Counted from the stretch's first letter, positions 10,209 to 60,283 are shown. The stretch is 64,000 nucleotides of DNA from Amoebophrya sp. A120 (GCA_905178155.1 CAJINV010000001.1:4013329-4077328), one strand, 5' to 3'. The notes: generated by a model not told the origin, from the letters alone. Made by a program: numbers and translations.

Positions 10209-12849
10209 ATGGGTAAATTTTCGGACCGTGGCTTCGTGGTCATTACTGGCGCGGCCGGTAATTTCGGTGCGGCGATGGCGAAGAAAGTGGTGGAAGAGGG
10301 GGGCTCTGTGCTTCTCATCGACACGCCGGCATTGACGAAGCCACTGGAGGCGCTGCGCGACTACCTTGCCGACCGTGCCGCGAAAATCTTCGCCGCACAA
10401 AAAAACGCGATAAAGCGCACGGTGAGCGGGACCGTGCTGAATCAACAACTTCTCTTACAACAAGGAACTTCTAGCAGAAACGGTTCCAGCAGCGATTTGC
10501 AGAAGATCCAACAAGGAAATATTAACGGGGACGCGTCGGCGTCGAACAAACCAGTGAAGCTGGAGGATGAGAACAGTACTAGCAAAAAGTCCTCCAATGG
10601 ACCGAGCAGTCCGCTTCCCCCCGGAGCCAACTCCGTGGACAACAGCGCCACAACGACCACCAGCAGTGGCGCACCCGTCGCAGCCACACCTAATGGCCCG
10701 CCGAGCATCAATGTCTACCCTCCGGCAACTGCGTTCAGTCCCGGGTCTCGCTTGTTACCGAGTCCGATGAGCCTGCCGCATCTCCAACAGCCACGCGTTT
10801 ATGAAATGCAAATATGTCTGGGTCTGGAAGAATGGAACTTGTAATGCTGTCTGCGGATTCTAAAAATAGCTGTGTTGCATGAGCAGCAAGAGGAGTCAGC
10901 TCTTGGCACGCGGAGAGGGCATTTCTCATGCGTAATTAGCATCAAGCAGCTCTCAAAAAATCTGTGATGCTAGCACCAGCATCACAGACCTCACGGGTCA
11001 TGCAAAACGTGCATGACAATCCCCGACTCTTCCAGACCCAGACATTTTTGCATTTGATAGCGTTCTCATGTTCACGATGGACGTGCGCATCGACAGCGAG
11101 ATCGCAAAAATGGAGAACTTATCCTGTGCAAAAGTATCGCACTCGTAGTAATCGCAGCTGTGCATTACAAATCTCCATCCCAAGGCAAAACAGCATGACA
11201 AATTCCACTTATCATTCTGAGCCAATTTGTAATGCGATTACTATATATTATATTCATGCGAAAAAAGAGGTAGACAGAGGGTAAACAAGAGGTGGCCGAG
11301 AGGTCAAAAAGAGGTCAAAAGAGGTAAAAAAGAGGTCGACAGAGGTGGAGAGGTGGCGCGGGACCCCTTTCGAGAGGGTCGGCGAGAGGGTGCGCGAGTA
11401 TAGCCCGCCGAAGGCCCCACCTTAAGGCGGCGCCTAAGTGCCTCAGAGGGTGCAGAGATGTCAAAAAGAGGGGGCGCGAGAGGTCGACAGAGGTCGAGAG
11501 AGGTGGCGCGAATAAGGGGCGACCTCTCGCGGACCCTCTTGGCCACCTCTCGGCCACCTCTGTCGACCTCTACTCGCGAGTATAGCCGGATTATTAGCGG
11601 GGACCCCCAAAAGAGGCAAAAAAGAGGGTCTGCGAGAGGTCTGCGAGAGGGTAAAGACACAAAGTGGTGGGCGCGAATCCGCATGGTACTACCATTATTT
11701 GGCACTGCAGGCTATTCGCGGACTTGTTTTGTTCGGCGCCTGTCCCCGCCACCCTCTCGCGCACCCTCTCGCGCACCCTCTCGCGCCACCCTCTCGCGCA
11801 CCCTCTCGCGCCACCCTCTCACAAACCTTCTCGCGCACCCTCTCGCGCCACCCTCCCGCGCTACCCTCTCGCGCCACCCTCTCGCGCTACCCTCTGCCGC
11901 CGAGCGGCTTCTGTTCGCCCCCGGCGTTCTTTGCCGCTGCTCGCTGCGCAGAGCGCCCGCAGGCGCGGGAAGCGCGCAAGTGGTCCTGCGGGTTGGCGCG
12001 GCGCAAACCGGCGGCACGAATGCAGTGTGTTTCGTTGTGCATAGGCCCGTGGGGTTGTGGTCCGGTCGGCAAATAGTCTTGCCCCGGCCCAACAGCCTTG
12101 CGCTCCGGCGGCAGCCGGAGCATGGCTGGTTACTACTAGTGCGATACTTTTCTTTGAAATGCATAGAACTTTCTGGAGCAGGAGAAGCTGATCGTCTACG
12201 GGCTCTTCAACAACGCGGGGATCCAGGGCGAAATTCAACCCATCTACGACACCACGGTGCAGGACTTTGAGAACGTCATCCAGGTGAACGTTGTCGGTGC
12301 CTTCAAGGTTTTGCGGTCCGTAACGAAGTACATGAAAGACCGAGGGCAAAAGGGCGCTGTGGTGTCAACCTCAAGCACGGCGTGGAACGGCGTGCCAAAC
12401 ATGATCGGGTATGGACGGTTAGTAATTGAGTTGTTGAAAAGACACACAGACATAGATAAACTCGATCGAGAAGTGAGATGTCAGAAACGAATCACGAATA
12501 CCACCCAAATACAACAAAAATCAGATACTCGATGTCCAAGGCCGCGGTAGTGGGCATGACGGGCAGCGCCGGCAAGGACCTGGCACCCTTCGGGATTCGC
12601 GTGAACTGCATCTCCCCGGGCCACGTGGGCGGCACCATGTGGGACCGCAAGCTGAACCTCCAGGCCAAACTGAACACGCAGTACTGGCCGCACGGGGACC
12701 CAAAGGCCATCGGCGAGGCCATGCTGAAAAAGGTTCCCCAGCGCCGAGCCGCGGACGTGACAGAAATCATCAACGTGGTTAGCTTTCTCCTCTCCGAAGA
12801 AGCATCCTTCATGACCGGGGAGAACGTGCGTGTCGCGGGCGGGGAGTAA
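10209..12849 (+). CDS. Short-chain dehydrogenase/reductase (SDR1); join(10209..10799,11065..11119,12171..12408,12525..12849)
   Basis: TGAAGNFG, NNAG, YSMSK and RVNCISPG motifs assemble after removing two IEs and one GT-AG intron (12409-12524). A long S/N/P-rich insertion follows the Rossmann N-terminus. Confidence 0.9.
10800..11059. mobile_element. Introner element, family A
   Basis: TIR TATGAAATGCAAATATGTCTGGGTCTGGAAG / CTTCCAGACCCAGACATTTTTGCATTTGATA; direct repeat GCGTT; removal gives PRV|LMFTMDV. Confidence 0.92.
11120..12165. mobile_element. Introner element, family B, carrying nested 894-bp element
   Basis: TATCCTGTGCAAAAGTATCGCACTCGTAGTA ... TACTACTAGTGCGATACTTTTCTTTGAAATGCATA; direct repeat GAACT; removal gives MEN|FLEQEKLIVYGLFNNAG. 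Confidence 0.92.
11238..12131 (+). mobile_element. 894-bp GC-rich non-coding element (N894), copy 1
   Basis: Near-identical inverted copy at 62034-62927. Internal AGAGGT(C/G) and CCCTCTCGCG repeats. 3' hairpin CTCCGGC-GGCA-GCCGGAG followed by CATGG-CTGG. Confidence 0.9.
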
Positions 12850-36145: not shown

Positions 36146-36647
36146 CATGTTTCCAAGCAAAGACAACATCAACATCAACAAACACGGCGAGTAGACAACT
36201 GCAAGCAAGGGAAGGGACTTCTCGGCGAATCCTCCTGGTCACTGGAATAGGTGTCTTTCCGCAACATCCTCCTCAATTCTTCCGTGGGGACACAGGGGAA
36301 CTAGAACTACCAACTTTCTGTTGCTGCCCGTCGTTACAAGATCCGGAATAACACGGTAGGGGTAGCAGACGCTCACGACGCAACATCAGACACTGGCTTT
36401 GACGTTTGTGGCATTATCCAGTGGCGTTCCAATTCCGGCAGGAGTCCTGATATTGATTAGTACAAGCGAAGTGAGCAGCAGCGCAGGAGGACGAGCTAAT
36501 TCTTAGCCACTTCCTCTTCTCCTTCTTGGCGGAGATTCATTTTAGTGAAGAGAGGCCGATAAACCCCACGACAAGATGTCGCAGTCCCGGATGCTGTCTG
36601 AGCAGACTTGCTTTCCGAAGTTTGATTCTCATCGGCGTGTTGACGCC

Positions 36648-37445
36648 GCGGACTCCGTTCCGACCTCTTCCTCCCTTCCCCTTCCGAGGGGTCGGAGCGG
36701 ACGTATGGGACCCCGTTCCGACCCCTGATGGCGGCCGACCCCGCGGACTGGCCAAAAAAAGGTCCCGCGGATTTGTTGGACAGGCAATATTTGTGGCGCC
36801 CGTTGCGTGACCCAAAAAATCCACCATAGCGTGCGGGCGCGGATTTTTTGGGACAAATCCGCGACAAATCCGCGAGCCCGCGGATTTGAAATCCGCGGAC
36901 CCCCTTTCGACAAATCCGCGGACCCCCTCCGCCGAGTCCGCGAATCGAGAATCCGATCGGGATTGGCGCCTTGCCAAGTGCCCTCGGGGGGCTTTATCAG
37001 GCTGTTATGGCCCATCCGCGGCGATCATCAAAGGCGCGTCCGCTTTGGGAGCTGGCGGGCCTCCGTGCCCTGGAACCTCCGGGGGGGCCTTCCAGGCTGC
37101 TATGGCCCCGGTCGGGGAAGGGCTTGGGGAGGGACTGGGGGAGGGGCCGCAGGGGTGGGCCAGGGGAGGGTGGGCCCGGGGTGGGTCAGGGGTCGGTGGG
37201 GCAGGGGAGGGGGAGCCAGGGGAGGGTGGGCCAGGGGTCGGTGGGGCAGGGGAGGGCCAGGAGAGGGTGGACCGCCCGGGTTTGGCCAGGGGTCGGTGGG
37301 GCAACCAGGGGTGGGCCAGCCAGGGGCGGGCCAGCCAGGGGCGGGCCAGCCAGGGACGGGCCACCAGGGGCGGGCCACCAGGGACCCAAATCCGCACAAT
37401 ATCCGCGCGCTGTTATTCTAACGGGTGTCCAAGCTCTAATATTAA
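36648..37445. mobile_element. ~800-bp GC-rich element (GC800), copy 1, flanked by 38-bp direct repeats
   Basis: Flanks at 36610-36647 and 37446-37483 (one mismatch). CCGCGGATTT/AAATCCGCGG repeats, a G-run-rich GGCCAGGGG region and an AT-rich end CTCTAATATTAA. Confidence 0.85.
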
Positions 37446-37661
37446 GCTTTCCGAAGTTTGATTCTCATCAGCGTGTTGACGCCATGTGATTCTGGTTTTC
37501 TCGGTTCTTGTCTGCAACTCGTTGCTGAAGTAGAAGAACAAGCGGCTGCGTATAGAACTAAAGATTGCCTCATTATTTTTTATTTCGGTCTACTTATCAT
37601 GCAATTCCAATTGGAAGTCATTTTTTTTTTTGTCTATCAAAAATCGGTTGGAATCTGTGTA

Positions 37662-38380: not shown

Positions 38381-38817
38381 TGGATCTCGAAAAGTTTCAA
38401 ATTGACGACGTGTGCGTCGGCTTTATCTCAGCTCTGTCGGTGCTCCAGTTGAGGTAGTGCAGTAGTGCGTCGCGTTGATTCAAATCGTTCGGTCCCTTAC
38501 AGAAAAGTGTGAAAGTGATATCGATGCTCGGTGAAGCAAGACAAAAGTTGTACAATTACACATACACGATCGATTGCAATTGGTGTGCGCCTTTACCCTG
38601 CTATTGCTTGTCTTGCTTTGATTCATTGGTCAGGAGGGTGATACTTGTTAATTCGTGTCATCATTCTCATATAACATCTCGAAGAACTACTCCCGGCTTT
38701 TCGAGTCTCAAAATCTGTTTCCACCGCAAAGACAAGTTAATAATATCCCAAAAGCACCACCACCCGCGAAGTTGAGACTGCTTTCCGAAGTTTGATTCTC
38801 ATCAGCGTGTTGACGCC

Positions 38818-39619
38818 GCGGACTCCGTTCCGACCCCTTCCTCCCTTCCCCTTCCGAGGGGTCGGAGCGGACGTATGGGACCCCGTTCCGACCCCTGATG
38901 GCGGCCGACCCCGCGGACTGGCCAAAAAAAGGTCCCGCGGATTTGTTGGACAGGCAATATTTGTGGCGCCCGTTGCGTGACCCAAAAAATGAAAAATCCA
39001 CCATAGCGTGCGGGCGCGGATTTTTTGGGACAAATCCGCGACAAATCCGCGAGCCCGCGGATTTGAAATCCGCGGACCCCCTTTCGACAAATCCGCGGAC
39101 CCCCTCCGCCGAGTCCGCGAATCGAGAATCCGATCGGGATTGGCGCCTTGCCAAGTGCCCTCGGGGGGCTTTATCAGGCTGTTATGGCCCATCCGCGGCG
39201 ATCATCAAAGGCGCGTCCGCTTTGGGAGCTGGCGGGCCTCCGTGCCCTGGAACCTCCGGGGGGGCCTTCCAGGCTGCTATGGCCCCGGTCGGGGAAGGGC
39301 TTGGGGAGGGACTGGGGGAGGGGCCGCAGGGGTGGGCCAGGGGAGGGTGGGCCCGGGGTGGGTCAGGGGTCGGTGGGGCAGGGGAGGGGGAGCCAGGGGA
39401 GGGTGGGCCAGGGGTCGGTGGGGCAGGGGAGGGCCAGGAGAGGGTGGGCCGCCCGGGTTTGGCCAGGGGTCGGTGGGGCAACCAGGGGTGGGCCAGCCAG
39501 GGGCGGGCCAGCCAGGGGCGGGCCAGCCAGGGACGGGCCACCAGGGGCGGGCCACCAGGGACCCAAATCCGCACAATATCCGCGCGCTGTTATTCTAACG
39601 GGTGTCCAAGCTCTAATAA
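38818..39619. mobile_element. GC800 element, copy 2, flanked by perfect 38-bp direct repeats
   Basis: Flanks at 38780-38817 and 39620-39657 are identical. Near-identical to 36648-37445. Confidence 0.85.
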
Positions 39620-40338
39620 GCTTTCCGAAGTTTGATTCTCATCAGCGTGTTGACGCCATGTGATTCTGGTTTTCTCGGTTCTTGTCTGCAACTCGTTGCT
39701 GAAGTAGAAGAACAAGCGGCTGCGTATAGAACTAAAGATTGCCTCATTATTTTTTATTTCGGTCTACTTATCATGCAATTCCAATTGGAAGTCATTTTTT
39801 CATGTAAGCTCCCGTGAATCGGTATCGGTTGTGAAACTTTTCGGAAAAAAGTCACACGCAGGCAGGTTGTTGTGATTCTCCGGGCAGAATAGTATCTGAA
39901 TAATCTTCTTAACCTCGGCAAGTGGCATAGGTGAAAAATGCATTGCAATTTTCAGAAATTGAAGGAAGCGTGTCGGTGTATTTGCAGGCAGTGAGTCACT
40001 GTGGGTGTGGTCACTCATCGGTATCTTTTTCCTTTTCGTGATGATCATCATGATCTGTGTCATGATTGGAAACCACAGAGGAACCTTTCTTTCCTTGAAG
40101 GTGCCTGCGGAAAAGGTCGGTGCAACGTAAATTAACAAAGGTATCATCAAGAAAGTTACGTGCGTCGTGGAGGTGTTAGCGATAATTCGAAGTAGACCTA
40201 GACCTAGAGAAAATAGAAAAAAAAAAGACAAAATGGCGACGGACGACACTGCACCGACGAGCGACCACCCGTACTTGACCGAGTACTTCGAGACCCAACT
40301 GGAAATGGTCGAGAAGAACATGAAGGACCTGTTGAACG

Positions 40339-45143: not shown

Positions 45144-48100
45144 ATGTCGCAGTCCCGGATGCTGTCTGAGCAGCCGTCGCAGCATATCACAGGCAAAAGT
45201 GTTAACGTTAACGGAGTTTGTGACGCAGTAGCGCATCAGAAAAAGTACTGAAATTTGTATTGCATAGCATGCATGCTCGGGAAAATTTGTAATGCGTGGC
45301 TACAATGCGTGATGAAATTGAAAACCGTTGATGGTAGCACTTTTTTGTTTGATACAGCAGTCGACGAGCTTAATGCAACCGGTCTCGACGGACAAGGATG
45401 CTTTCAAGCAGAAAACCATGAACCAGGAGATCATACGTCTTCTCAACGGCTTTTCCATGAGTAGGCGCCTGATGATGTCGCAGAACCGACGGGCCTACCG
45501 GCAACCGCAGCTTTTGAACGACGACGTCAGGAGAATAGAAGCGTCCATGTGCAAGCTGCTACAGTACTATAGCGTTGTCTTGTTGTGGTGCTTCTTGTTG
45601 TTCGCGAAAAATCTTGCTGATAAGCCTGTGATTTTGTTTCACATTTTTTCCTTTGCCTTTTCGCTGATCAAGTTCAACACACACCACAGAAAAATGGATT
45701 TTCAATTTGTGCGGCGGTTTTCCGACGCGCAGCTTGCCAAACTCGTGAACGGCCTGAGGATAATAACGAAGAAGCCCGACGAGTTTGTCTTTCACAAGGG
45801 CGACATGGCCAGCTCGATATATTTCATCTTTCTCGGAGAAGTGGATGTTTTAGGTCCGGACGCAGGCGATCCGGTATTCTTGATTGCCCTTCTGCTCGTT
45901 TTTGTTTCAGTTTGCCCCCGTGTGAGAATCAATCACACTTGTCGTTGAAAAATCGAGCTTTAGTTCGGAGATGACTTCTGCTTCTCGCTCCTCTCTGACT
46001 AATCATCAGACGCAAAGCGCCAACGACAAGTAGAAGCACAACTCACTTTCTTAGGTGAAGCGACTCGGCGCCTGTCTGAATTTCGGCGACACCGAGCGGT
46101 ACGGCGCCCCGAGGAAGAGCTCTGCCGTGGCGCACAGTTACACGATACTCGGAGCGCTGGACAAGCAAGCGTTTTTGTCAACAAAGAGCGAACAGCAGGT
46201 CATGGAAGACAGTCGGAAGCTCCAAATCGTAAAACGCGTGCCACCTTTTTCCGCGCTCGTCGATAAGGAGGTGCAGCAGGTTTGCAACCGGCTAATACCG
46301 CTGCGAGCGCCCGCAAGACTGCCGGTCTGCGGCAATAGCCACGAGGTAAATAGAGGATTGGAATCATATTTGATGAAGATGTGGATACTAGGCACCACTT
46401 TTTTTGATGCTCCTCAGTCACTTCTTCTTTGTCTACCTTATGATAGATTTTTGGTTTATCGCATTTAGATCGTGTTTGCGCCCCGAGAAGTAGAGGATGA
46501 AAAAGTTGACGATGAAAATTCAAAATGCATTCATATTTCACATCATCTCAACAGCTGTCACGACATATCGTCATAGTCATGAGTGGCGTCTTCGAGATAA
46601 GGGCAACGATTTTGGTTTCAAGGAACGCAGTCGGTCTGCAGGCCAGTGGGCAGAGTCTAGCTTTTTCCGACGTCCCCATAATATCGCTCGAAAAAGGTAT
46701 TTCCTATGCTAGAGGTAGAGCGAGGTCTGGCGCATGATTTCTTCCACTTTGAGAATGCGGCATCTCGTTCGCCATGATGATGATAAGGATATGCCGTGCT
46801 CACTGTAGCTGGCGAAAGCACTCATCTTCATAAAAACCCATGGCTAGAAATGTTGAAGAAAGAAAAACAGAAACTGATATATGATTTCCAGGCTCCATAT
46901 GGAATGGCGACCTGGTCATGGCCGACGAGGAGGACCGTGATTGGTGCACCGGCGTCGAGTTTTCGCATTACAACATGTACCCGCGGGCAGACGCGAAGTG
47001 CCTGGTCATGAGCATTATGCAATACAAATTTCCCGTACATGTACAAGATGCATCACAAATTTTACCAATTTGGAGCGTAAATAAACTTGTCGCTAAACTA
47101 GGATCGAAGCCAAGTTTTGTCATGCGGAGACCGCATTTGTACGTGTACGGGAAATTTACTGTGGATATGCATCCGCGAACTCCAGAGAATAAGTTACAAC
47201 AACAGGCTGCTGCGAAGGTGGTTCGAGTCGTACGCGACCCTGTTCCAGAACAATAGAAGGTACATTCATAATGGTAAAACAAGGAATCAAGTTGAGGTCA
47301 TGGAATCAAGTTAACTGGAATCAAGTTAGACCTGGAATCAGGTTATATGGAATCAAGTTAAACCCGGAATCAAGTTGCATGGAATCAAGTTACTACCTGG
47401 AATCAAGTGGAATGGAATCTTCAAGTAAACCACCACAACTTCATCCCCATCAGTCCTTCGCCTCGCAATGCCTCCTCTTGGAAGAATCTATCTGCTGCGC
47501 TTTTTGTGTTTTGTGACTGCCACACCCTCTCTCGGAAGGGGTGTGTCTCTGGGAATTCCGTCTTCATTTCGCCTTCCCTCGGGAGACCCATTGCTCATGG
47601 GACTCCGTTTCCACTTCGCATTCCTGGGGATGGTGTCAGTCTCGGGGGACTCCGTTTTTCCTTCCTGCGGAAGGTGTCTCGGGGGCCGCCATTTCGCCGC
47701 CCTTGCCCTCTGGTAGGTCTCTCCAGGGATTCTATTTCGCCTCCTTCGGAAGGTATCTTTGGCGATTGGCAGGGATCTCATCTCTGGCAGTTCCATCTTG
47801 TCTTCCCGATGTTCGGGATTTCCGCCTGCAGCACTAAGGGGCCGCGGCTTTGCCTCAGGTGTTTGGCATGCCATTTGCCAACTTCGGCCCCTTCGCCTTG
47901 GGGAGATCCGGGGCGTTTACCTTCGGAAGCGCCGAAGCGTTCACCTTCGGAGGCTTCGAAGCTTTCTTGGCTTCGACAGCCCCGGATGTGTCGCCTTCGG
48001 AAGCTTTGGCGGGTCTCTCCCTGGCGGAAGGACCGCTGGTTTATTGCCTCTCGGGGGAGTCTGCGTTGTCGTTCCTATGCGACCCTGTTCCAGAACAATA

Positions 48101-48595
48101 GAAGGTACATGCATAGGACATTTTTTTATCGCGCTGCATGTGCATCTTCATTTTGTTTCTGTCGCGGCGGCTCGCTATGAGATACCGCGAAGACGTATAT
48201 GATCTCGAGTTCTTCGACTGCATCAAAGAAAACCAAGCAAAGAAAAAAAAAGAAAAACCAAAATGATGAAGTCATGATCTTTATCGTATGAAGTCTGTGC
48301 CAAGAACAAGCCATGAAATTCTAACAGGGACAGCGTGTACGAGATTCTATCCTACCTGTGCAAGCCAGATTTCCAGTCAAAAACGTCCGGGTACATGAAG
48401 GAAATCATCCGCAGCATGGACTATGGGGAGGTGAGGTGGAAGGGCATTTTGAAAAAGTACGAGGCGGAAATACTCGAGGACGCCTTAGATTTCGATGCCG
48501 TCCGCAAACTCGAGGAGAACATCGCGAAAAAGAAGGGCGAACGGAAGGAAATCGACCTGGAGAAGGAAAGAGGGGGAATGAAGGCGCTCTTCTAA
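45144..48595 (+). CDS. Cyclic-nucleotide-binding domain protein; join(45144..45184,45360..45563,45690..45873,46055..46345,46555..46696,46892..47015,47173..47259,48334..48595)
   Basis: FVFHKGDMASSIYFIFLGEVDV ... NFGD ... PRKSSAVA (cNMP domain) plus a second degenerate repeat. Five GT-AG introns and two IEs are phase-compatible. The last exon may start at 48328. Confidence 0.82.
45185..45354. mobile_element. Introner element, family D
   Basis: TATCACAGGCAAAAGTGTTAACGTTAACGG / CCGTTGATGGTAGCACTTTTTTGTTTGATA; direct repeat CAGCA. Confidence 0.88.
47016..47167. mobile_element. Introner element, family C
   Basis: TATGCAATACAAATTTCCCGTACATGTACAA / TTGTACGTGTACGGGAAATTTACTGTGGATA; direct repeat AGCAT/TGCAT; removal gives LVMSI|RELQR. 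Confidence 0.9.
47266..48075. mobile_element. ~810-bp insert flanked by 35-bp direct repeats of the exon end plus splice donor
   Basis: TA(C/T)GCGACCCTGTTCCAGAACAATAGAAGGTACAT at 47231-47265 and 48076-48110. GGAATCAAG tandem repeats at 47283-47424. Confidence 0.8.
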
Positions 48596-54853: not shown

Positions 54854-55484
54854 ATAAAAGTAGTACGAATAGGAAATAAGCAAGCCAAAGTGGCTCTTAT
54901 CCTTGTCTCGCTCTCCTCGTCGCCCCCTGCGGCTTACTTGCATCCTTATCCTTTCCCACGCGTTTTCGTTTCAAGGCGTCGAGTGAGCTAGTTTCGCTTT
55001 CGCAGTGACGTCAATCATGAAAAACTAAAAAAAAGCATCAGTGAACTTCACTTACGAGAAAACCGAAAGCCGCAAGACTTTTTCTTCACGTTTGTTGATA
55101 TGTTGGGCTGTTTGCCTGAGTTCAGTAGCAGCTTGCCCAACCAGCACCACGGGGGAACCTAACCTTATCTCTGGAAAAATCCGTCCGCGCCAGAAAGAAA
55201 TCCAGCGTTGTGTTCACAGGTGGAGATGATACTTCTAGTGCCGCTTAATATCGTTCTTCTCTCGTCTCGGTCCGGCGTAGTAGACAGTCGCGGTCTACTA
55301 CTGCCTTGTTTGAGAGGTCGGTGCCTCTCGTGCTCGAAAAAGTGATGAGATTGATCTGTGTCATGTTTTTTTCGAGAGGAGGGGTCTGTAGTTGGTGTCA
55401 CGACTGTCACTTCAGTGCATTCGTGTTTCAGACCTATTAGCCAAGTAGACAAGAACGACGTCGACGTCGAATATAAGCAAAACC

Positions 55485-58400
55485 ATGTATTCCCCCGAGA
55501 AGGACAAGCTGACGGGGGCCGCGTACGACAATCTGCCCGGCGGTTTTTGTCCCCCGAAATTCGAGACCAATGGGAAAAACCGGTTTACAAACAAAACCGT
55601 CATCGTGACCGGTGGCGCCGGGAACTTCGGCAAGAGCTGCGCGCTGCGCATGGCGAGCGAGGGGTGCAACATTGCGCTCTGGGATTTGGTTGACGCCAGC
55701 CCGGTCGTGGAAGAGATTAGAAGGAAGTACCCGGAGGTGAATGCAAAGTCCTATCAGCTGAACGTCACGGAGCACGAGAAAGTGGAAGAGGTAGCAAAGC
55801 AGGTAAAGGTAGATTTCGGGAAGATTGACTACCTGTTCAACAACGCCAGTTACCAGGGCGATTTGAAGAAGATGATGAACTGCTTGCGCAGTTCCCTTAT
55901 CATGTGCAAAAGTGTCGCGCTCATAGCAATTGCAATCATGCATTGAAATCTTTTTCTCAAGGTCAATCCGCATCACAAACTTTTTTTTCTCATGTTGAGG
56001 GGATTTGTCATGCAGTTATACATATGTGTGCGATACCTTTGTAATTTATACCCCGGCACGGTACTGCCCGGCAGTTCCTTCAATATCTCAATTTCGGACG
56101 GCACTGAAGTCCCGAACTATTAAGACCTTCACTGTCAAGACACGGGCCGACTTGGTGGAGATACCCACGATGGCCGCGCTCTGTGAGCTGATGACAGTTG
56201 ATGAGGCCCGGGCCTTGTCCGAGTATCTCGAAAGACTTTGCGACAAGCACGGCACTGCCATGGTGGTCGCTGCCTGGAACTCTATGGTCTGTGATTCCTT
56301 CTGCTTTGGGGCCTCCAATTTCTCCGGGGATTTATCAAGGTTCATGCGCAACTCGATGCGTACGGATCTCAAGCTCGAGATCCACAGCCTGTTGCTCCGC
56401 CGCCCGTCCGCTGAGGCCGATGGCGCGGGGACCCAGGGGAGGCCGACCAAGCTCAGAAAACTTGAAGAGGCGCCGAAGAGTTTCTGTTGGTTTCACGCTG
56501 TGGGCATGTGCACGCGCGCGACTTGCAACCAGCCCCACCGGGTGCCGACCGCTGAGGAGCTCAGTGACGTTCTGCCGCGTGTTACAAATTCCGTCCTGCG
56601 TGAAAAGATGGAGAAGAAGCTGGGTGAGTTAAAGCAGCAGTAAGAGGCGCGAGTTTTTGATTTATAAAAAACAAGCACATCCGCTAACGTCCTAGCAATT
56701 TAGCTACTGCCCCGGGGTCTGTCGCCTTTGGGGATAGCATTTTATAACTTTTCGGTCTATCACATGCTTAGTTCCGGGTTTTTCTGCTATGAGCGAGAAT
56801 GCATACACTCGCCTCTGGACCGTCAAACCTTGTTTTACTTGGCACAGTTGATGACAGCGTTAGTGGTGGTGCAATTTTTCTCTGGGTTTTGCCTCTCTCT
56901 CGAGAGCCTGTTGCTGTACTTCATGCGAGTATGTTCTGCCCACCTGGTGGCACATGACTCTACTTCTTTTTCGTGTGGCACGGCGTCTGTGCGCTTCCGT
57001 TTCAAGTGTCGCTGCCCGAGCAGCCTTTGTTTTTCCGAACTTTGGTTTTGGTCTCGCTCTAGTCGTGCTTTCTTTCTTCCTTCGTCGTTTTTCTCTTTTC
57101 TTCTTCTCTTCTTTCTCTTTTGTACTTCCGGGTCTGCGCCCCTTCGTACCAACGGGCCTCTCTCTCTCCGTCATCGGGGTTGTCAGGTATATTTCCGGTC
57201 TGGCGACCCACGTTCGCTTGCTCGGCCCGTTGTTGTCTCCGACAGATCGCGTTATAAAATACCTGTTCAACAACGCCGGTTACCAGGGCGATTTGAAGAT
57301 ACGCTGGCGAAATCTGTCAACAAGACCTTGTTTTCAACAAAACGAAAAAAAAATTCTATATCTAGCGAGCAGGTAAGACAGGTCCACAAAGAACTCGAAC
57401 ACCCCGCACAAGCTCGACGTCCGCCAGGCTGCCCCGGAACCATCGGGTTATGAAAGATAAAACTTAAGTTAGCTAGTGGCGCACAATAACTAGATTAATC
57501 AAGCCAATATGTTCAGAGAAACTCTTATAGCCCCAGCAGAGGACGGCGCCCAGTCCGCGCCCCCCGGCCGTTCGCTCCGCCTGTTTGGTATCCGGATGGG
57601 GTAGTGCCAAGACCTTCCTGCGCCGCCGTTGCGATCGTTCGATACCCCGTCTCAAAACGCTGAACCCCCCGGCTGCAGTATTACATCCTCTCGTCGAACC
57701 ACTCTCGGTCGGTGGATTTTCAAGCCCAACTTGCTGTCCAAGCTGCTACCTCCGCCTCGTCGATCGAACTGTCCGTGAGATGGCTGGAGTTGTTTCTCCT
57801 GCTCGTGTGGTCTATGATAGTCAGCAACGATCGACATCGTAGAAGAGTTGCGAGACGTGCGATAGCGCGTCTGGAATGTTGTGGCACTCAGGCAAGAGCT
57901 CTACAGCTGTGGGTCGTAAGAATTGGCAAGTACTTCGGTTGTTGATGTTCGTGTTTACTGGGGCCGTGAGTGATTCTCTAGACCAATGGCACCGTGGGTG
58001 TAATGAGAGCGAGTTTTGTTGCGTTCGATAGCGACACATCCTGCACCTTTCGAAGCACTAGCTGAAGCTAGACATACCCGATAGAGCAGCATACAATCCG
58101 CCCCCGCCGTTTCTCGTAGAAATAAGACGCAAACACCCCAAATACCCCTCCAAAAGATGGCCACCACGATGATCACTGACCGGCGGATTGTTCCGAACAC
58201 CGTCAAGGCGACGCACTCCAACGCGCTGAAGGAGTGCGACCAGTGGTCGCACTCAAAGCAGTTGCTCTGCAAGTTTTCTGCATGAGGCGGATTTTCGCAT
58301 GACAAGCTTGCATATCGCCCCACCTGGGGAAGCAGTATGTCCTTCAGCTTTTCTGTTGCGGACGCTGCTTCCCAAATGGTCTTCAGGTGTTTTTGCGTAA

Positions 58401-60283
58401 ATTATGCATGCGCACACGATGTGTGCAGGCGTTGCGTACGCCGATCTTTTGGGCGAAATCTTGCATGAAGATATGGCACAAAACGGGGGCACGACCTCGG
58501 TGTTTGTCATGACAAAAGTCCGAATCTGTCATGCATTTTCTCGAATTCTGTCTGTTGTGTTTCTGGGCCAGAAACCGGGCCTGCTCTATCATTTCCAGGC
58601 GCCAAACAATTGCGGTTCATAAGGGGATCCGGAAACAGCGAGACCCGCTCCTGCAGAAGAACGTCGACACCGCGAAAATCCTGGCACAAATTAAAACGGA
58701 CCACGTCGACATCCGAGACGACCGGCTTGTCAAGCTCATCGAAACTGCTCACAAAACGCCCGACCCTTCTCTCCTGACACAGCAGCAGAAACAAGTCTTT
58801 GAACGCTTCGAAAGCGTCATTGAAACTAGTGAGAAGAACAGCAGCTGGCAGAACTATGGGCTCCCCGGGTTACGATTAAAGGTCGTGCTGGACCTGGTGC
58901 AGGCTACCTGTTCAACAACGCCGGTTACCAGGGCGATTTGAAGAAGGCGGAAAGCTACAACCCAGCCGACTTTAAGAAGGTTTTGGACATCAACTGCAAT
59001 GGGGTTTTCTACGTCCTCCAAGCGGTCGCGAACATCATGGCGAAAGACGGTGGGGGCGCGATTGTGAACACCGCGTCCATGGCCGCGCATTCTTATCAGG
59101 GTGATAGCACAACTACAACTCCCTCGCACGACCTCACTGCAGCCGTGTGAGCAGCAAGAAGAACTGTAGTTCTTCTTGCTGCTCACACGGCTGAAGTGAC
59201 CACAGATGTGTTCTTCTTTCTGTTCAACAGAAGCCCTACCACAAATGTATCTCATCTATCTTGCGCATGACAAAGAACAAACACTATCTGAGACTCCACT
59301 ACTACAAGGAGCGTACTTAGTACCTACTCCAACTCTTTAGGGGTACAACTAGTTCCACAATTAGTCCTGCGAGCGGTGCTCAAATTATTCAAGATCTGAA
59401 CTCGGCTTCTTGCATCTCAAATGACGAGGGGCAGGGTGCTGACGTCGAGTTGTGCACTCTGATAAATCTGGCCCGGCGAACATGATCGCGTACGGAACCT
59501 CAAAAGCAGCGGTGCTACATATGACGAAAATCGCGGCCAAGGATTACGCCCCGTCCAACATCCGGGTAAATTCGATCTCCCCTGCATTTATCGGCCCCGG
59601 CTTCATGTGGACACGGCAGGTGGAACTGCAGGCGGCGGCGGGTAGCGTGTACTACGATCCGGACCCGTATCCACTGCAAAAGTATCGTACTCGTAGTAAT
59701 TGCATTTATGCATTACAAATCTCTTTCTCAAGAGAAATCAGCACTACAAATTCAATTTGTAATGCTGGGGGAAAAATTTGTAATGCAACTTATACTAGTT
59801 CTAGTACGATACTTTTGCAATTCATAACCCGAACGTCGTGGCAAAACAGATGGTGGAATCGACGTGGATGCGACGGTATCCCCTGCAAAAGTATCGTACT
59901 CGTAGTAATTGCTATCATGCATGACAAATATCACTCTCTTGGTAAAACAGCATTACAAGTTGCATTCTTCTTCTTGCAAAAATTTGTGATGCAATTTGTA
60001 CTACGGCGATACTTTTGCAATGCATAGCCGCTACGGGCTGATCGAGGAGGTGATCGGGCCGGTCACGTTTCGATCTCCCCTGCGTTTATGCAATACAAAT
60101 TTCCCGTACATGTACAAAATGCATGACAAATCGCACTAACTTGGAGGGTCCAACTTGTGATGCTGAATAAGATTGAAAGCAAGTTTTGTCATGCAGAAAC
60201 ATGTGAATGGGGTCACGTTTCTGCTGTCGGACGACGCGTCGTATGTGAATGGGGTGGATATCCAGATTACGGGAGGAATGTAG
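55485..60283 (+). CDS. Short-chain dehydrogenase/reductase (SDR2), 292 aa if all five interruptions are removed; join(55485..55871,58947..59093,59470..59667,59832..59876,60032..60070,60221..60283)
   Basis: TGGAGNFG, NNA(G/S), NTAS, YGTSK, IRVNSISP and FLLSDDASYVNG. The 879-nt frame is intact after removal. It may be a recently disrupted gene. Confidence 0.8.
55898..56050. mobile_element. Degenerate family-B introner inside insert 1
   Basis: TATCATGTGCAAAAGTGTCGCGCTC ... GTGCGATACCTTTGTAATTTATA; flanking 5-mers decayed (TCCCT/CCCCG). Confidence 0.7.
56170..56643 (+). CDS. 157-aa ORF with a CCCH-type zinc finger, carried within insert 1
   Basis: CWFHAVGMCTRATCNQPH = C-x7-C-x4-C-x3-H; helical N- and C-terminal parts. 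Confidence 0.6.
   Translation: MAALCELMTVDEARALSEYLERLCDKHGTAMVVAAWNSMVCDSFCFGASNFSGDLSRFMRNSMRTDLKLEIHSLLLRRPSAEADGAGTQGRPTKLRKLEEAPKSFCWFHAVGMCTRATCNQPHRVPTAEELSDVLPRVTNSVLREKMEKKLGELKQQ
59094..59464. mobile_element. Introner element, family F-like
   Basis: TATCAGGGTGATAGCACAACT / AGTTGTGCACTCTGATA; direct repeat ATTCT/AATCT; removal gives AAHS|GPANMIAYGTSK. Confidence 0.85.
59668..59826. mobile_element. Introner element, family B
   Basis: Direct repeat ACCCG; removal gives DPDP|NVVAKQM. Confidence 0.9.
59877..60026. mobile_element. Introner element, family B
   Basis: Flanking 5-mers GACGG/GCCGC; removal gives WMRR|YGLIEEV. Confidence 0.87.
60071..60220. mobile_element. Truncated family-C introner with templated fillers and a 10-bp direct repeat
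   Basis: GGTCACGTTT at 60061-60070 and 60211-60220; left TIR at 60087; right TIR missing. Confidence 0.8.

Follow-up and report, generated by a model that had tools for sequence, protein, structure and literature searches.

Stacked one-ended insertions as the probable cause of a broken SDR gene in Amoebophrya sp. A120

An exon of an SDR gene in Amoebophrya sp. A120 carries a repeat-insert-repeat-insert-repeat block of about 3 kb, and the gene is split, dead and non-functional. The explanation that we favor, and consider probable, is that the gene was broken by one-ended insertions stacked at one site, with the target re-copied in an error-prone manner after each of them. The anatomy of the locus, its recurrence elsewhere in the genome, and its consequences in RNA are what we observe; the mechanism we infer. 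The locus lies in a 64-kb window, i.e., the whole stretch of DNA analyzed.

As a first-pass annotation had described, a 40- to 43-nt piece of the exon is present three times (Table 1); a repeat search and a separate scan both recovered the copies, with spacers of 1387/1388 bp and 1604 bp. A genome-wide search found no further copy anywhere in the 115.5-Mb genome, and this confinement to three places excludes chance. Copies 1 and 3 have 43 nt in common with a single mismatch, an A at 55848 in copy 1 instead of G, which turns NNAG into NNAS; copy 2 shares the 40-nt core, which is identical to 58905-58944. The two inserts have no repeats in common within the locus and are, as first proposed, unrelated to each other.

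The ancestral state is evident from the orthologue P0020 of Amoebophrya strain A25. Exon 1 aligns to its residues 1-125 with 64% identity, and residues 114-175 are matched by the sequence that begins with copy 3, so that the repeat stands once in the orthologue, as it also does in the relatives P0002, P0007, and P0017. It follows that 3,075 bp were inserted. The alignments to P0020 bear out the earlier proposals that collapsing the three copies to one restores the SDR frame and that the block is an insertion into a once-intact SDR exon.

Table 1. Features of the interrupted SDR locus, with positions counted from the first base of the window
Feature	Position	Strand	Basis or remark
SDR exon 1 (Rossmann half)	55485..55871	+	ORF; repeat copy 1 makes up its last 43 nt
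Repeat copy 1, 43 nt, core 55830-55869	55829..55871	+	G>A at 55848 (NNAS)
Insert 1, 1387 bp: single-copy interior and one precise transposon end on the 3' side	55872..57258	+	Genome searches
MITE-like introner in insert 1	55894..56053	+	Ordinary type, hundreds of copies; spliced in annotated model
157-aa ORF with CCCH-like motif	56170..56643	+	Orphan
Family A 3'-terminal module	57089..57258	+	Ends ...GTTATAAA(A), flush with repeat copy 2
Repeat copy 2, core 57260-57299, 40 nt	57259..57301	+	Transposon terminus on either side
Insert 2, 1604 bp: one transposon TIR end and single-copy interior	57300..58903	+	Genome search; RNA contig
56-bp terminal inverted repeat (TACGCTGGCGAAATCTGTCAACAAGACC...) of 1507-bp TIR element family	57300..57355	+	Flush with repeat copy 2
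Repeat copy 3, 43 nt	58904..58946	+	Runs straight into remaining SDR coding sequence
Downstream SDR exons	58947..60283	+	RNA contig joints, direct sequence reading, orthologues P0007, P0017, P0020

The inserts had been reported to lack terminal inverted repeats and element ends. It is correct that neither has an inverted pair at its ends, but each has one real transposon terminus, that of family A at the end of insert 1 and a 56-bp TIR at the start of insert 2, and both termini point at, and abut, the middle copy. The family A module has 86-95% matches in five other loci, all stopping at the same base, and the family A end is flush with duplications of 34 nt at L028, 61-70 nt at L030, and 55 nt at L031. 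Insert 2 matches the rest of the genome over its bases 1-56 only. For the interiors of both inserts, and likewise for those of L030-Y and L031, a donor copy is lacking genome-wide (four of four cases). In insert 1, positions 27-180 match many loci at 80-86%, corresponding to the introner of Table 1, and the 157-aa ORF is probably not a conserved gene: it has zero homologues among 5.8 billion proteins and zero paralogues in the genome, and its sole Pfam match, to Torus, is sub-threshold (E=0.0011).

The 56-bp TIR belongs to the TACG family, whose full-length 1507-bp copies at L023 and at L022, the latter within a known MITE, have 5-bp target-site duplications (TSDs). Only these full-length relatives show both inverted termini with a short fixed TSD, the hallmark of DDE cut-and-paste transposition; each insert in the SDR gene has one terminus and a 40- to 42-nt duplication. 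In truncated TACG copies, duplications of 33 nt at L024 (3 nt of filler plus element positions 747-1507), 34 nt at L025 (17 nt of filler plus 775-1507), and 55 nt at L026 (element positions 1-1337) all begin exactly at the intact terminus.

Long target duplications with inserts stacked at one site, as first noted at the SDR gene, are found with the same anatomy at other loci of these families. The one-off repair scar that had been considered is thus not what we see: the pattern recurs genome-wide. In all four families one end is flush, the other is often truncated or patched, and the duplication spans 24-79 nt. In the third family, with GGTAAAACAAGGAATCAAG ends, 15 of 20 loci have duplications of 28-79 nt, and the copies concerned have one flush end and an opposite end that is truncated or bears 1-24 nt of filler; in the fourth family the duplications are 24-59 nt. 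Two additional cases, of 38 and 37 nt, lie inside the window. The median duplication length is 45 nt (n=19 well-defined events). A+T makes up 71% of the terminus-side edge, compared with 47% in the background (p=2e-8); the far edge, at 53%, has no bias. Three-copy arrays occur at 3 of the ~25 loci examined. L024 and L030, like the SDR locus, have three copies, and nested edges at L030 show two successive events. On a smaller scale, a 24-nt fragment of an additional duplication copy separates the element end from the right copy at L072, and at L084 element bits of 16 nt are interspersed with three to four incomplete copies of the duplication.

In the explanation that we favor, two insertions of opposite polarity would have occurred at one exonic site, each bringing a segment with one precise transposon terminus and one arbitrary end: the family A '...GTTATAAA' end in insert 1, and the 56-bp TIR of the 1.5-kb element in insert 2. 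One element end would be attached with precision at a nick where the target is A+T-rich, and the opposite target strand would break 25-90 bp away; a template-switching-prone polymerase would then fill in and re-copy the target. The remaining end of the element, in many cases truncated and in some bearing filler, would be end-joined last. Duplication of the same ~40- to 42-bp stretch at each event, the second re-using the same edges to within 1-2 nt, would yield the observed array with both termini on the middle copy. This re-use speaks against the proposal: independent hits do not predict that events of opposite polarity share both duplication edges within 1-2 nt, and the shared edges need hot nick sites or nicking at the existing terminus junction. 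As to the enzymes, MULE, hAT, Harbinger, DDE_3, and piggyBac models had no match in the genome, with controls for two of the models likewise silent, and the rve profile had ~30 matches; the five transposase models without a match may argue against a transposase half-reaction. The single-copy cargo argues against an RNA copy-and-paste route.

Target-primed reverse transcription (TPRT) by resident non-LTR elements, in which nicks serve for the copying of RNAs that have the conserved termini at their ends and a far-displaced second nick gives rise to the long duplications, differs from our favored explanation in enzymology alone; we regard it as unlikely. It would account for a 3' junction that is precise, an opposite end truncated to varying extents with filler or microhomology, a variable TSD, and an A+T-rich first nick, all of which are seen in L1-type TPRT, including that of trans-mobilized or 5'-transduced RNAs. 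The genome has >100 reverse-transcriptase (RVT_1) ORFs, of which many are long and open, and an APE-type LINE family (GDFN / DH motifs, nearest L1 ORF2p) whose 3' end is fixed and lacks poly(A) and whose copies are in many cases 5'-truncated, and the failure to match DDE transposases of five superfamilies may also favor this route. Yet either end of the TIR elements may be the precise one, which needs RNAs from both strands that end at the element tips; the full-length TACG copies have the clean 5-bp TSD of DNA transposons; and the cargo interiors have no donor. Nor do the inserts contain a poly(A) or spliced-leader relic, and the termini have no likeness to the one LINE 3' end examined. The usual L1 TSD is moreover 7-20 nt, as against 24-90 nt here, and the present elements have inverted termini and no linked autonomous partner.

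Rather unlikely is a single complex repair episode, in which a polymerase mending a staggered exon break switched between the target and two loose transposon-end fragments and re-copied the target each time, so that all three copies arose together. The identical edges of the three copies would then need no coincidence, three-copy arrays are frequent, and L072 and L084 look like micro-versions of such an episode. However, we found no simple strand-by-strand path that in one pass gives both termini on the middle copy; twin priming from two break ends predicts termini on the outer copies. The inserts are also kilobase-sized and of opposite polarity, and the nested, non-identical edges at L030 fit successive insertions better.

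The RNA evidence consists of Logan contigs from one sample, which give neither strand nor true ends and in which rare spliced forms could escape. Depth in these contigs is 5 over exon 1, 3-8 over insert 1, 95 over insert 2, and 244-319 over the downstream exons, making exon 1 ~50-fold rarer than exon 2. Insert 1 has the depth of exon 1 and is therefore not spliced out. The contig over exon 1 continues into insert 1, and a single unspliced contig covers 57270-58944, i.e., insert 2. Downstream, three non-canonical introns are spliced (59091-59466, 59663-59826, and 59874-60028), their joints 59090>59467, 59662>59827, and 59873>60029 being found in X3 RNA at depth 208-319; among the RNA joints listed there is none across the 3-kb block. 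In the RNA-guided annotation, the 154-aa protein P0001 starts in exon 1, reads into insert 1 and ends within it, and its junction of ...MMNCLRSS to RHGTARQF... shows that the introner of insert 1 is spliced in the annotated model. Exon 1 now runs into insert 1 and is barely expressed. The far commoner transcript would begin where insert 1 ends or slightly past that point, keep insert 2, and reach the correctly spliced downstream exons, with the 3' half of the SDR gene now driven from the insertion.

These observations speak against the suggestion that the block is removed from RNA and for the other explanation offered for NNAS, a dead gene. They bear equally on the idea that the block as a whole, or each insert separately, forms a non-canonical intron with 40-nt direct repeats at its ends, such that SDR is still made. 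The non-canonical introns of Amoebophrya have direct repeats at their borders and no GT-AG (PMC7789003), the three spliced downstream introns are of this kind, and collapse of the repeats restores the frame. Given the scarcity of exon 1, its contig entering insert 1, the retention of insert 2, the end of P0001 inside insert 1, the 40- to 43-nt length of the direct repeats, and the lack of an inverted pair linking the ends of either insert, this reading is highly improbable and largely refuted already.

An assembly error, in which insert 2 is an unlinked piece joined into the gene through the 40-nt repeat, is just as improbable. Contigs assembled from short reads at k=31 break at the repeat and do not on their own show which of the two identical 40-nt copies comes first, and the order of copies 2 and 3 is taken from the published long-read assembly. 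But all junctions are supported by Illumina-type DNA contigs (run X1) at an even, single-copy depth of ~42-46, the SNP anchors copy 1 uniquely, the published assembly was built with Nanopore reads and places the locus on a 16.5-Mb contig, and the architecture is repeated at many unrelated loci; an alternative path would still leave a 42-nt duplication around insert 1.

Capture into an array of the CRISPR, casposon or integron type has a negligible probability, as have remnants of three tandem SDR paralogues cut back to the repeat, and both are already refuted: the CRISPR/casposon logic that had been invoked is a formal likeness in repeat-spacer-repeat layout only, the repeat being host exon sequence that is single in orthologues, the spacers (1387 and 1604 bp, both with transposon ends) contrasting with the dedicated fixed repeat and short uniform spacers of such systems, and the duplicated sequences differing from locus to locus (24-79 nt), while paralogue remnants need three independent truncations at the same two bases in a genome in which no close SDR paralogue was found. 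In Pfam, the ORFs within and next to the block have no Cas1-type integrase domain.

Among known systems, the site-specific LINEs of the R2/CRE group have long TSDs (49 bp for SLACS, 126 bp for R9) and encode a reverse transcriptase and a restriction-like endonuclease, which act at one conserved site with a fixed TSD. They resemble the present case in that target duplications of tens of bases arise from two widely spaced nicks. The proposed likeness to them fails, however, over the target site, the constancy of the TSD, and what the element encodes: targets and TSD lengths here vary from locus to locus, and the inserts are non-coding, with no reverse transcriptase or endonuclease ORF in an ORF scan and Pfam search. 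One-ended or aberrant transposition with abortive gap repair is represented by half-site strand transfer, Tn3/IS91-type events, and P-element abortive repair. It shares with our inserts one intact end, a truncated other end, and completion by host repair, and the same family here has two-ended copies with 5-bp TSDs; long target duplications are nevertheless unusual there, and no transposase was detected in the A120 genome with the five models.

Similar in description is the 'insertion with long target duplication' of Helicobacter (Nobusato et al. 2000) and Arabidopsis, where transposed genes have flanking repeats of >30 bp that are single at the orthologous site (PMC2869330). The SDR locus falls in this descriptive class, with >30 bp duplicated around the insert and single at the orthologous empty site, and in both settings single-copy DNA lies within a duplication that no classical transposon explains. 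It differs in having a repeated transposon terminus flush with the duplication, frequent events, and stacking.

A literature search found no paper on long target duplications in Amoebophrya, the genome paper giving 3- to 5-nt repeats only (PMC7789003). Amoebophrya genomes are already famous for transposon-like introns without a known mobilizing enzyme, and the SDR locus is a case of a second anomaly, undescribed in the literature searched: one precise end, target duplications that are very long and vary in length, truncation in many cases, and stacking. We tentatively suggest that Amoebophrya may have an undescribed DNA-insertion pathway that joins one transposon end precisely at an A+T-rich nick, re-copies 25-90 bp by template-switch-prone synthesis, can bring attached unique non-transposon DNA, and returns or stutters at a site to give repeat-insert arrays. 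If so, this pathway would rank as a major way in which genes are disrupted in Syndiniales and, at other loci, possibly as one of intron or exon gain. Should the route be enzymatically new, or an extreme form of target-primed synthesis, it would bear on how mobile DNA spreads without recognizable transposases and on gene breakage and rewiring in Amoebophrya. The message of the single locus is more modest, a dead split gene that is neither a capture system nor a giant intron.

Amoebophrya introners have 3- to 5-nt direct repeats and 8- to 20-nt inverted repeats and were analyzed at 40-1000 bp (Farhat et al. 2021, PMC7789003); the same study reported no transposase in A120. Introners resemble the present inserts in being mobile, exon-interrupting, and direct-repeat-bounded in the same genome, and one lies in insert 1 and three downstream in the SDR gene. 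They are removed from RNA, whereas the inserts are kept and have 40-nt repeats and ends that are not inverted. The last introner of the gene (~60072-60221), which has an 11-nt direct repeat (GGTCACGTTTC), is itself retained in the dominant RNA contig.

A 40-43-nt piece of an SDR exon, encoding YLFNNA(G/S)YQGDLK(K), occurs three times in Amoebophrya sp. A120 and was confined to these three places in a search of the entire 115.5-Mb assembly. The intervening spacers, of 1387 and 1604 bp, are unrelated to each other; the repeat scan and genome search thus confirm the first-pass annotation's description of three copies with unrelated spacers. The orthologue from strain A25 (P0020, 299 aa) contains GKIDYLFNNAGYQG once, with the downstream sequence directly after it, as do three environmental relatives (P0002, P0007 and P0017). 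When P0007 and P0020 were compared with the A120 locus at the protein level, exon 1 aligned to P0020 residues 1-125 and copy 3 onward to residues 114-175. Because the segment is single in P0020 and the relatives, the ancestral gene carried a single copy, and the A120 lineage gained 3,075 bp by insertion. The exon 1 protein matches the A120 record P0001, an NCBI 'unnamed protein product', at 100% identity; among annotated A120 proteins in the size range searched, none for the 3' half of the gene was found. The SDR exons, searched individually, matched no close paralogue in the A120 genome, the sole other match being a distant SDR gene in the same window.

Genome searches showed the interior of insert 1 to be single-copy, and its last ~170 bp to have 86-95% matches at five other loci, all of which stop at one base, GTTATAAA(A), adjoining copy 2. 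Insert 2 is single-copy throughout beyond its first 56 bases; those 56 bp, sharply bounded at TACG and likewise adjoining copy 2, are the terminal inverted repeat (TIR) of a 1507-bp element family. There is precisely one genuine element terminus per insert, and copy 2 lies between these two termini, both of which face it. The proposal of two stacked insertions, each with a target duplication of ~40 nt, is supported, with the addition that each also bears a transposon end. Neither insert contains a spliced-leader relic. A 157-aa CCCH-like open reading frame in insert 1 was considered as a zinc-finger cargo gene; the case is weak, as the only Pfam match to any insert reading frame was a sub-threshold one of this frame to Torus, and since it has no homologue anywhere we do not call it a cargo gene.

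Coordinates of the features discussed (window positions unless a locus, L###, elsewhere in the A120 genome is named)
Feature	Position	Remarks
Distant SDR gene	12203-12382	42% identity to exon 2; ~44 kb upstream, same strand
Paralogous empty sites of 798-bp element	35032; 41194	
798-bp GC-rich element	36610-37483; 38780-39657	G-rich 15-nt tandem repeats; 38-nt flanking duplication
Third-family member, truncated copy	47234-48115	37-nt duplication (47234/48079); positions 1-799 of ~1.5-kb element with 120-bp subrepeat TIRs; left terminus 2 nt from duplication, right TIR missing
SDR exon 1	55485-55871	
RNA contig of exon 1	55445-55886	
Repeat copy 1	55829-55871	43 nt in common with copy 3, one mismatch (A at 55848)
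Insert 1	55872-57258	
Introner in model P0001	55894-56053	
Single-copy interior of insert 1	56056-57085	
Rise in RNA contig depth	57252-57300	
Repeat copy 2	57259-57301	40-nt core only, identical to core of copy 3
RNA contig of insert 2	57270-58944	
Insert 2	57300-58903	
Repeat copy 3	58904-58946	
Intron joints	59090>59467; 59662>59827; 59873>60029	
Hairpin in first of these introns	59134-59199	
Last SDR introner	~60072-60221	11-nt direct repeat GGTCACGTTTC at 60061-71 and 60211-21
Full-length 1507-bp TACG-TIR element	L022:1993-3499	inside common introner MITE (TATGCAAT|...|GCAATACAAATTTCCC)
352-bp family-A unit	L028:2978-3845; L029:2782-3330	
Partial extra target copies	L072:1801-1824; L084:425-600	
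APE-type LINE	L088:301-2991	

The same anatomy recurs in four element families. The TACG family includes two full-length copies with 5-bp target duplications, one of them the clean insertion at L022, where the sequence of the introner MITE that it splits confirms the duplication. The L022 copy demonstrates canonical, DNA-transposon-like insertion in the A120 genome, where no transposase was detected. Three truncated copies of this family have duplications of 55, 33 and 34 nt that start exactly at the intact terminus, with 0-17 nt of filler at the truncated end. Family-A ends at L028, L030 and L031 are flush with duplications of 34, 61-70 and 55 nt; these inserts have their terminal 115-234 bp in common and nothing more, and two of the three interiors are single-copy. 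A 352-bp unit, without an Rfam family or a reading frame, has the family-A end as its final 83 bp; it occurs in short tandem arrays (three copies in L028) and is inverted head-to-head in L029, an arrangement reminiscent of foldback elements. In the third family (ends GGTAAAACAAGGAATCAAG / GGACGTCCAAGGAATCAAG), 15 of the 20 loci fetched have duplications of 28-79 nt; a flush end, formed by either terminus, stands opposite an end that is truncated or linked via 1-24 nt of filler. A truncated member lies in the window itself. Duplications in the fourth family measure 24-59 nt, and a 798-bp element in the window, flanked by a duplication of similar kind, was later tandemly duplicated as a unit (2170-bp period, 99-100% identity). 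Across the 19 well-defined events, duplication lengths range from 28 to 79 nt (median 45). The presence of long-duplication inserts at many loci makes the phenomenon general in the A120 genome; other long-repeat cases in several families clearly dispose of the idea that the SDR inserts are one-off repair scars. No convincing coding reading frame was found in the element families, and an Rfam search of the window and six element loci gave no match, the element ends containing neither a ribozyme nor an snRNA.

The seven positions at the terminus-side edge of the duplications are 71% A+T against a background of 47% (p=2e-8); A+T content is 53% at the far edge and 47% in the duplication middle. 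Because the bias is found at the terminus-side edge alone, the two edges are not equivalent: one break looks enzyme-chosen and the other unspecific. The non-terminus junction is sloppy, with truncation and filler. At L072 and L084 this junction also contains partial extra target copies (21-31 nt, up to four consecutively) that alternate with 16-nt element fragments, a miniature repeat-insert-repeat array. Together these features are the signature of a template-switching polymerase.

These junctions suggest a mechanism in which one element end would be joined precisely at an A+T-rich nick, a second target break would fall 25-90 bp from the nick, and the target would be re-copied before the far end, often truncated, is end-joined. 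Two routes to this outcome carry roughly even weight. An RNA route resembling target-primed reverse transcription (TPRT) suits the junction anatomy as well as the enzyme inventory: the A120 genome has more than 100 RVT_1 reading frames, among them an APE-type LINE at L088 whose 883-aa open frame has GDFN and DH endonuclease motifs and whose reverse transcriptase is closest to L1 ORF2p. The 3' end of this LINE, common to ~19 5'-truncated copies, is fixed ~35 nt past the stop and has no poly(A). The reverse transcriptase loci examined have no flanking repeats and nothing in common with the other loci. Three features speak against the RNA route: either TIR end can be the precise one, full-length copies have a clean 5-bp duplication, and the single-copy cargo lacks donors. 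All three suit a DNA route, in which one cleaved element end would be joined and host repair would re-copy the target and end-join the other end, but no enzyme for this route was detected. Models for MULE, hAT, Harbinger, DDE_3 and piggyBac had no match in the A120 genome, the controls being silent as well for two of these models; this agrees with Farhat et al. (PMC7789003), who found no transposase in A120. For rve there were ~30 matches and for GIY-YIG five, two of the latter in reading frames of more than 1,200 aa (C2:452428 and C25:26428), which are candidate enzymes along with the rve-bearing frames. We commit solely to the core shared by both routes, namely end-joining, a second break, re-copying and far-end joining.

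Three-copy stacks are also present at L024 and L030. At L030 the two duplications have edges offset by 9-20 nt and nested as expected from two successive insertions; at L024 one edge is common to both duplications, and in the SDR stack both edges are common to within 1-2 nt. For the SDR stack, two successive events seem to us slightly more likely than one stuttering episode. Two further models, circle integration by homologous recombination and twin priming that starts at both break ends, are rejected, as each gives two repeat copies only and places the termini wrongly.

As regards known systems, neither a CRISPR- or casposon-like array nor a site-specific LINE with long target duplications, the two likenesses proposed in the first-pass annotation, is supported; the mode of action is nearest to TPRT or to one-ended transposition finished by repair. 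The SDR inserts fit the descriptive class 'insertion with long target duplication', known from Helicobacter restriction-modification genes and transposed Arabidopsis genes (PMC2869330). The Amoebophrya genome paper (PMC7789003) reports introner repeats of only 3-5 nt and analysed introns of 40-1000 bp, and long target duplications in A120 did not turn up in full-text literature searches. The SDR locus is one more instance of an apparently undescribed, genome-wide insertion mode in Amoebophrya sp. A120.

The RNA evidence consists of assembled contigs from one sample (run X3), which carry neither strand nor true ends and may have lost rare isoforms; the raw runs X9 and X10 contain almost no reads from A120. 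That the X3 contigs represent RNA follows from three clean intron joints downstream, all non-canonical, as is usual for A120. Exon 1 has a depth of 5, and its contig runs on into insert 1 (depth 3-8); insert 2 is a single colinear contig of depth 95, followed by exon 2 at 244 and later exons at 319. As there is no close paralogue in the genome, the depths are not inflated that way. The published RNA-guided model P0001 (154 aa) likewise extends past exon 1 into insert 1, where it removes a small introner and ends. The inserts thus remain in RNA, and the intron reading of the block is not supported. The SDR gene is split and dead, with its 5' half nearly silent; the 3' half belongs to an abundant transcript that starts where insert 1 ends, or immediately after, and that retains insert 2. 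Of the two ways proposed for NNAS in copy 1 to be tolerated, removal of the block from RNA is not supported, and a dead gene stands, NNAS lying in the dead 5' fragment. The dominant contig (depth 319) likewise keeps the last SDR introner, a retention that would swap the conserved C-terminus (..VTFLLSDDASYVNGVDIQITGGM) for a short out-of-context tail.

Immediately after the GTTATAAA end of insert 1, contig depth rises from ~6 to ~95. One possibility is that this family-A terminus is an outward-facing promoter (TATAAA lies ~30 nt upstream of the rise); alternatively, repeat copy 2 may contain a processing site. Further downstream, the spliced non-canonical intron 59091-59466, whose two ends have just TCT in common, contains a 32-nt hairpin that is 97% complementary with a 2-nt loop.
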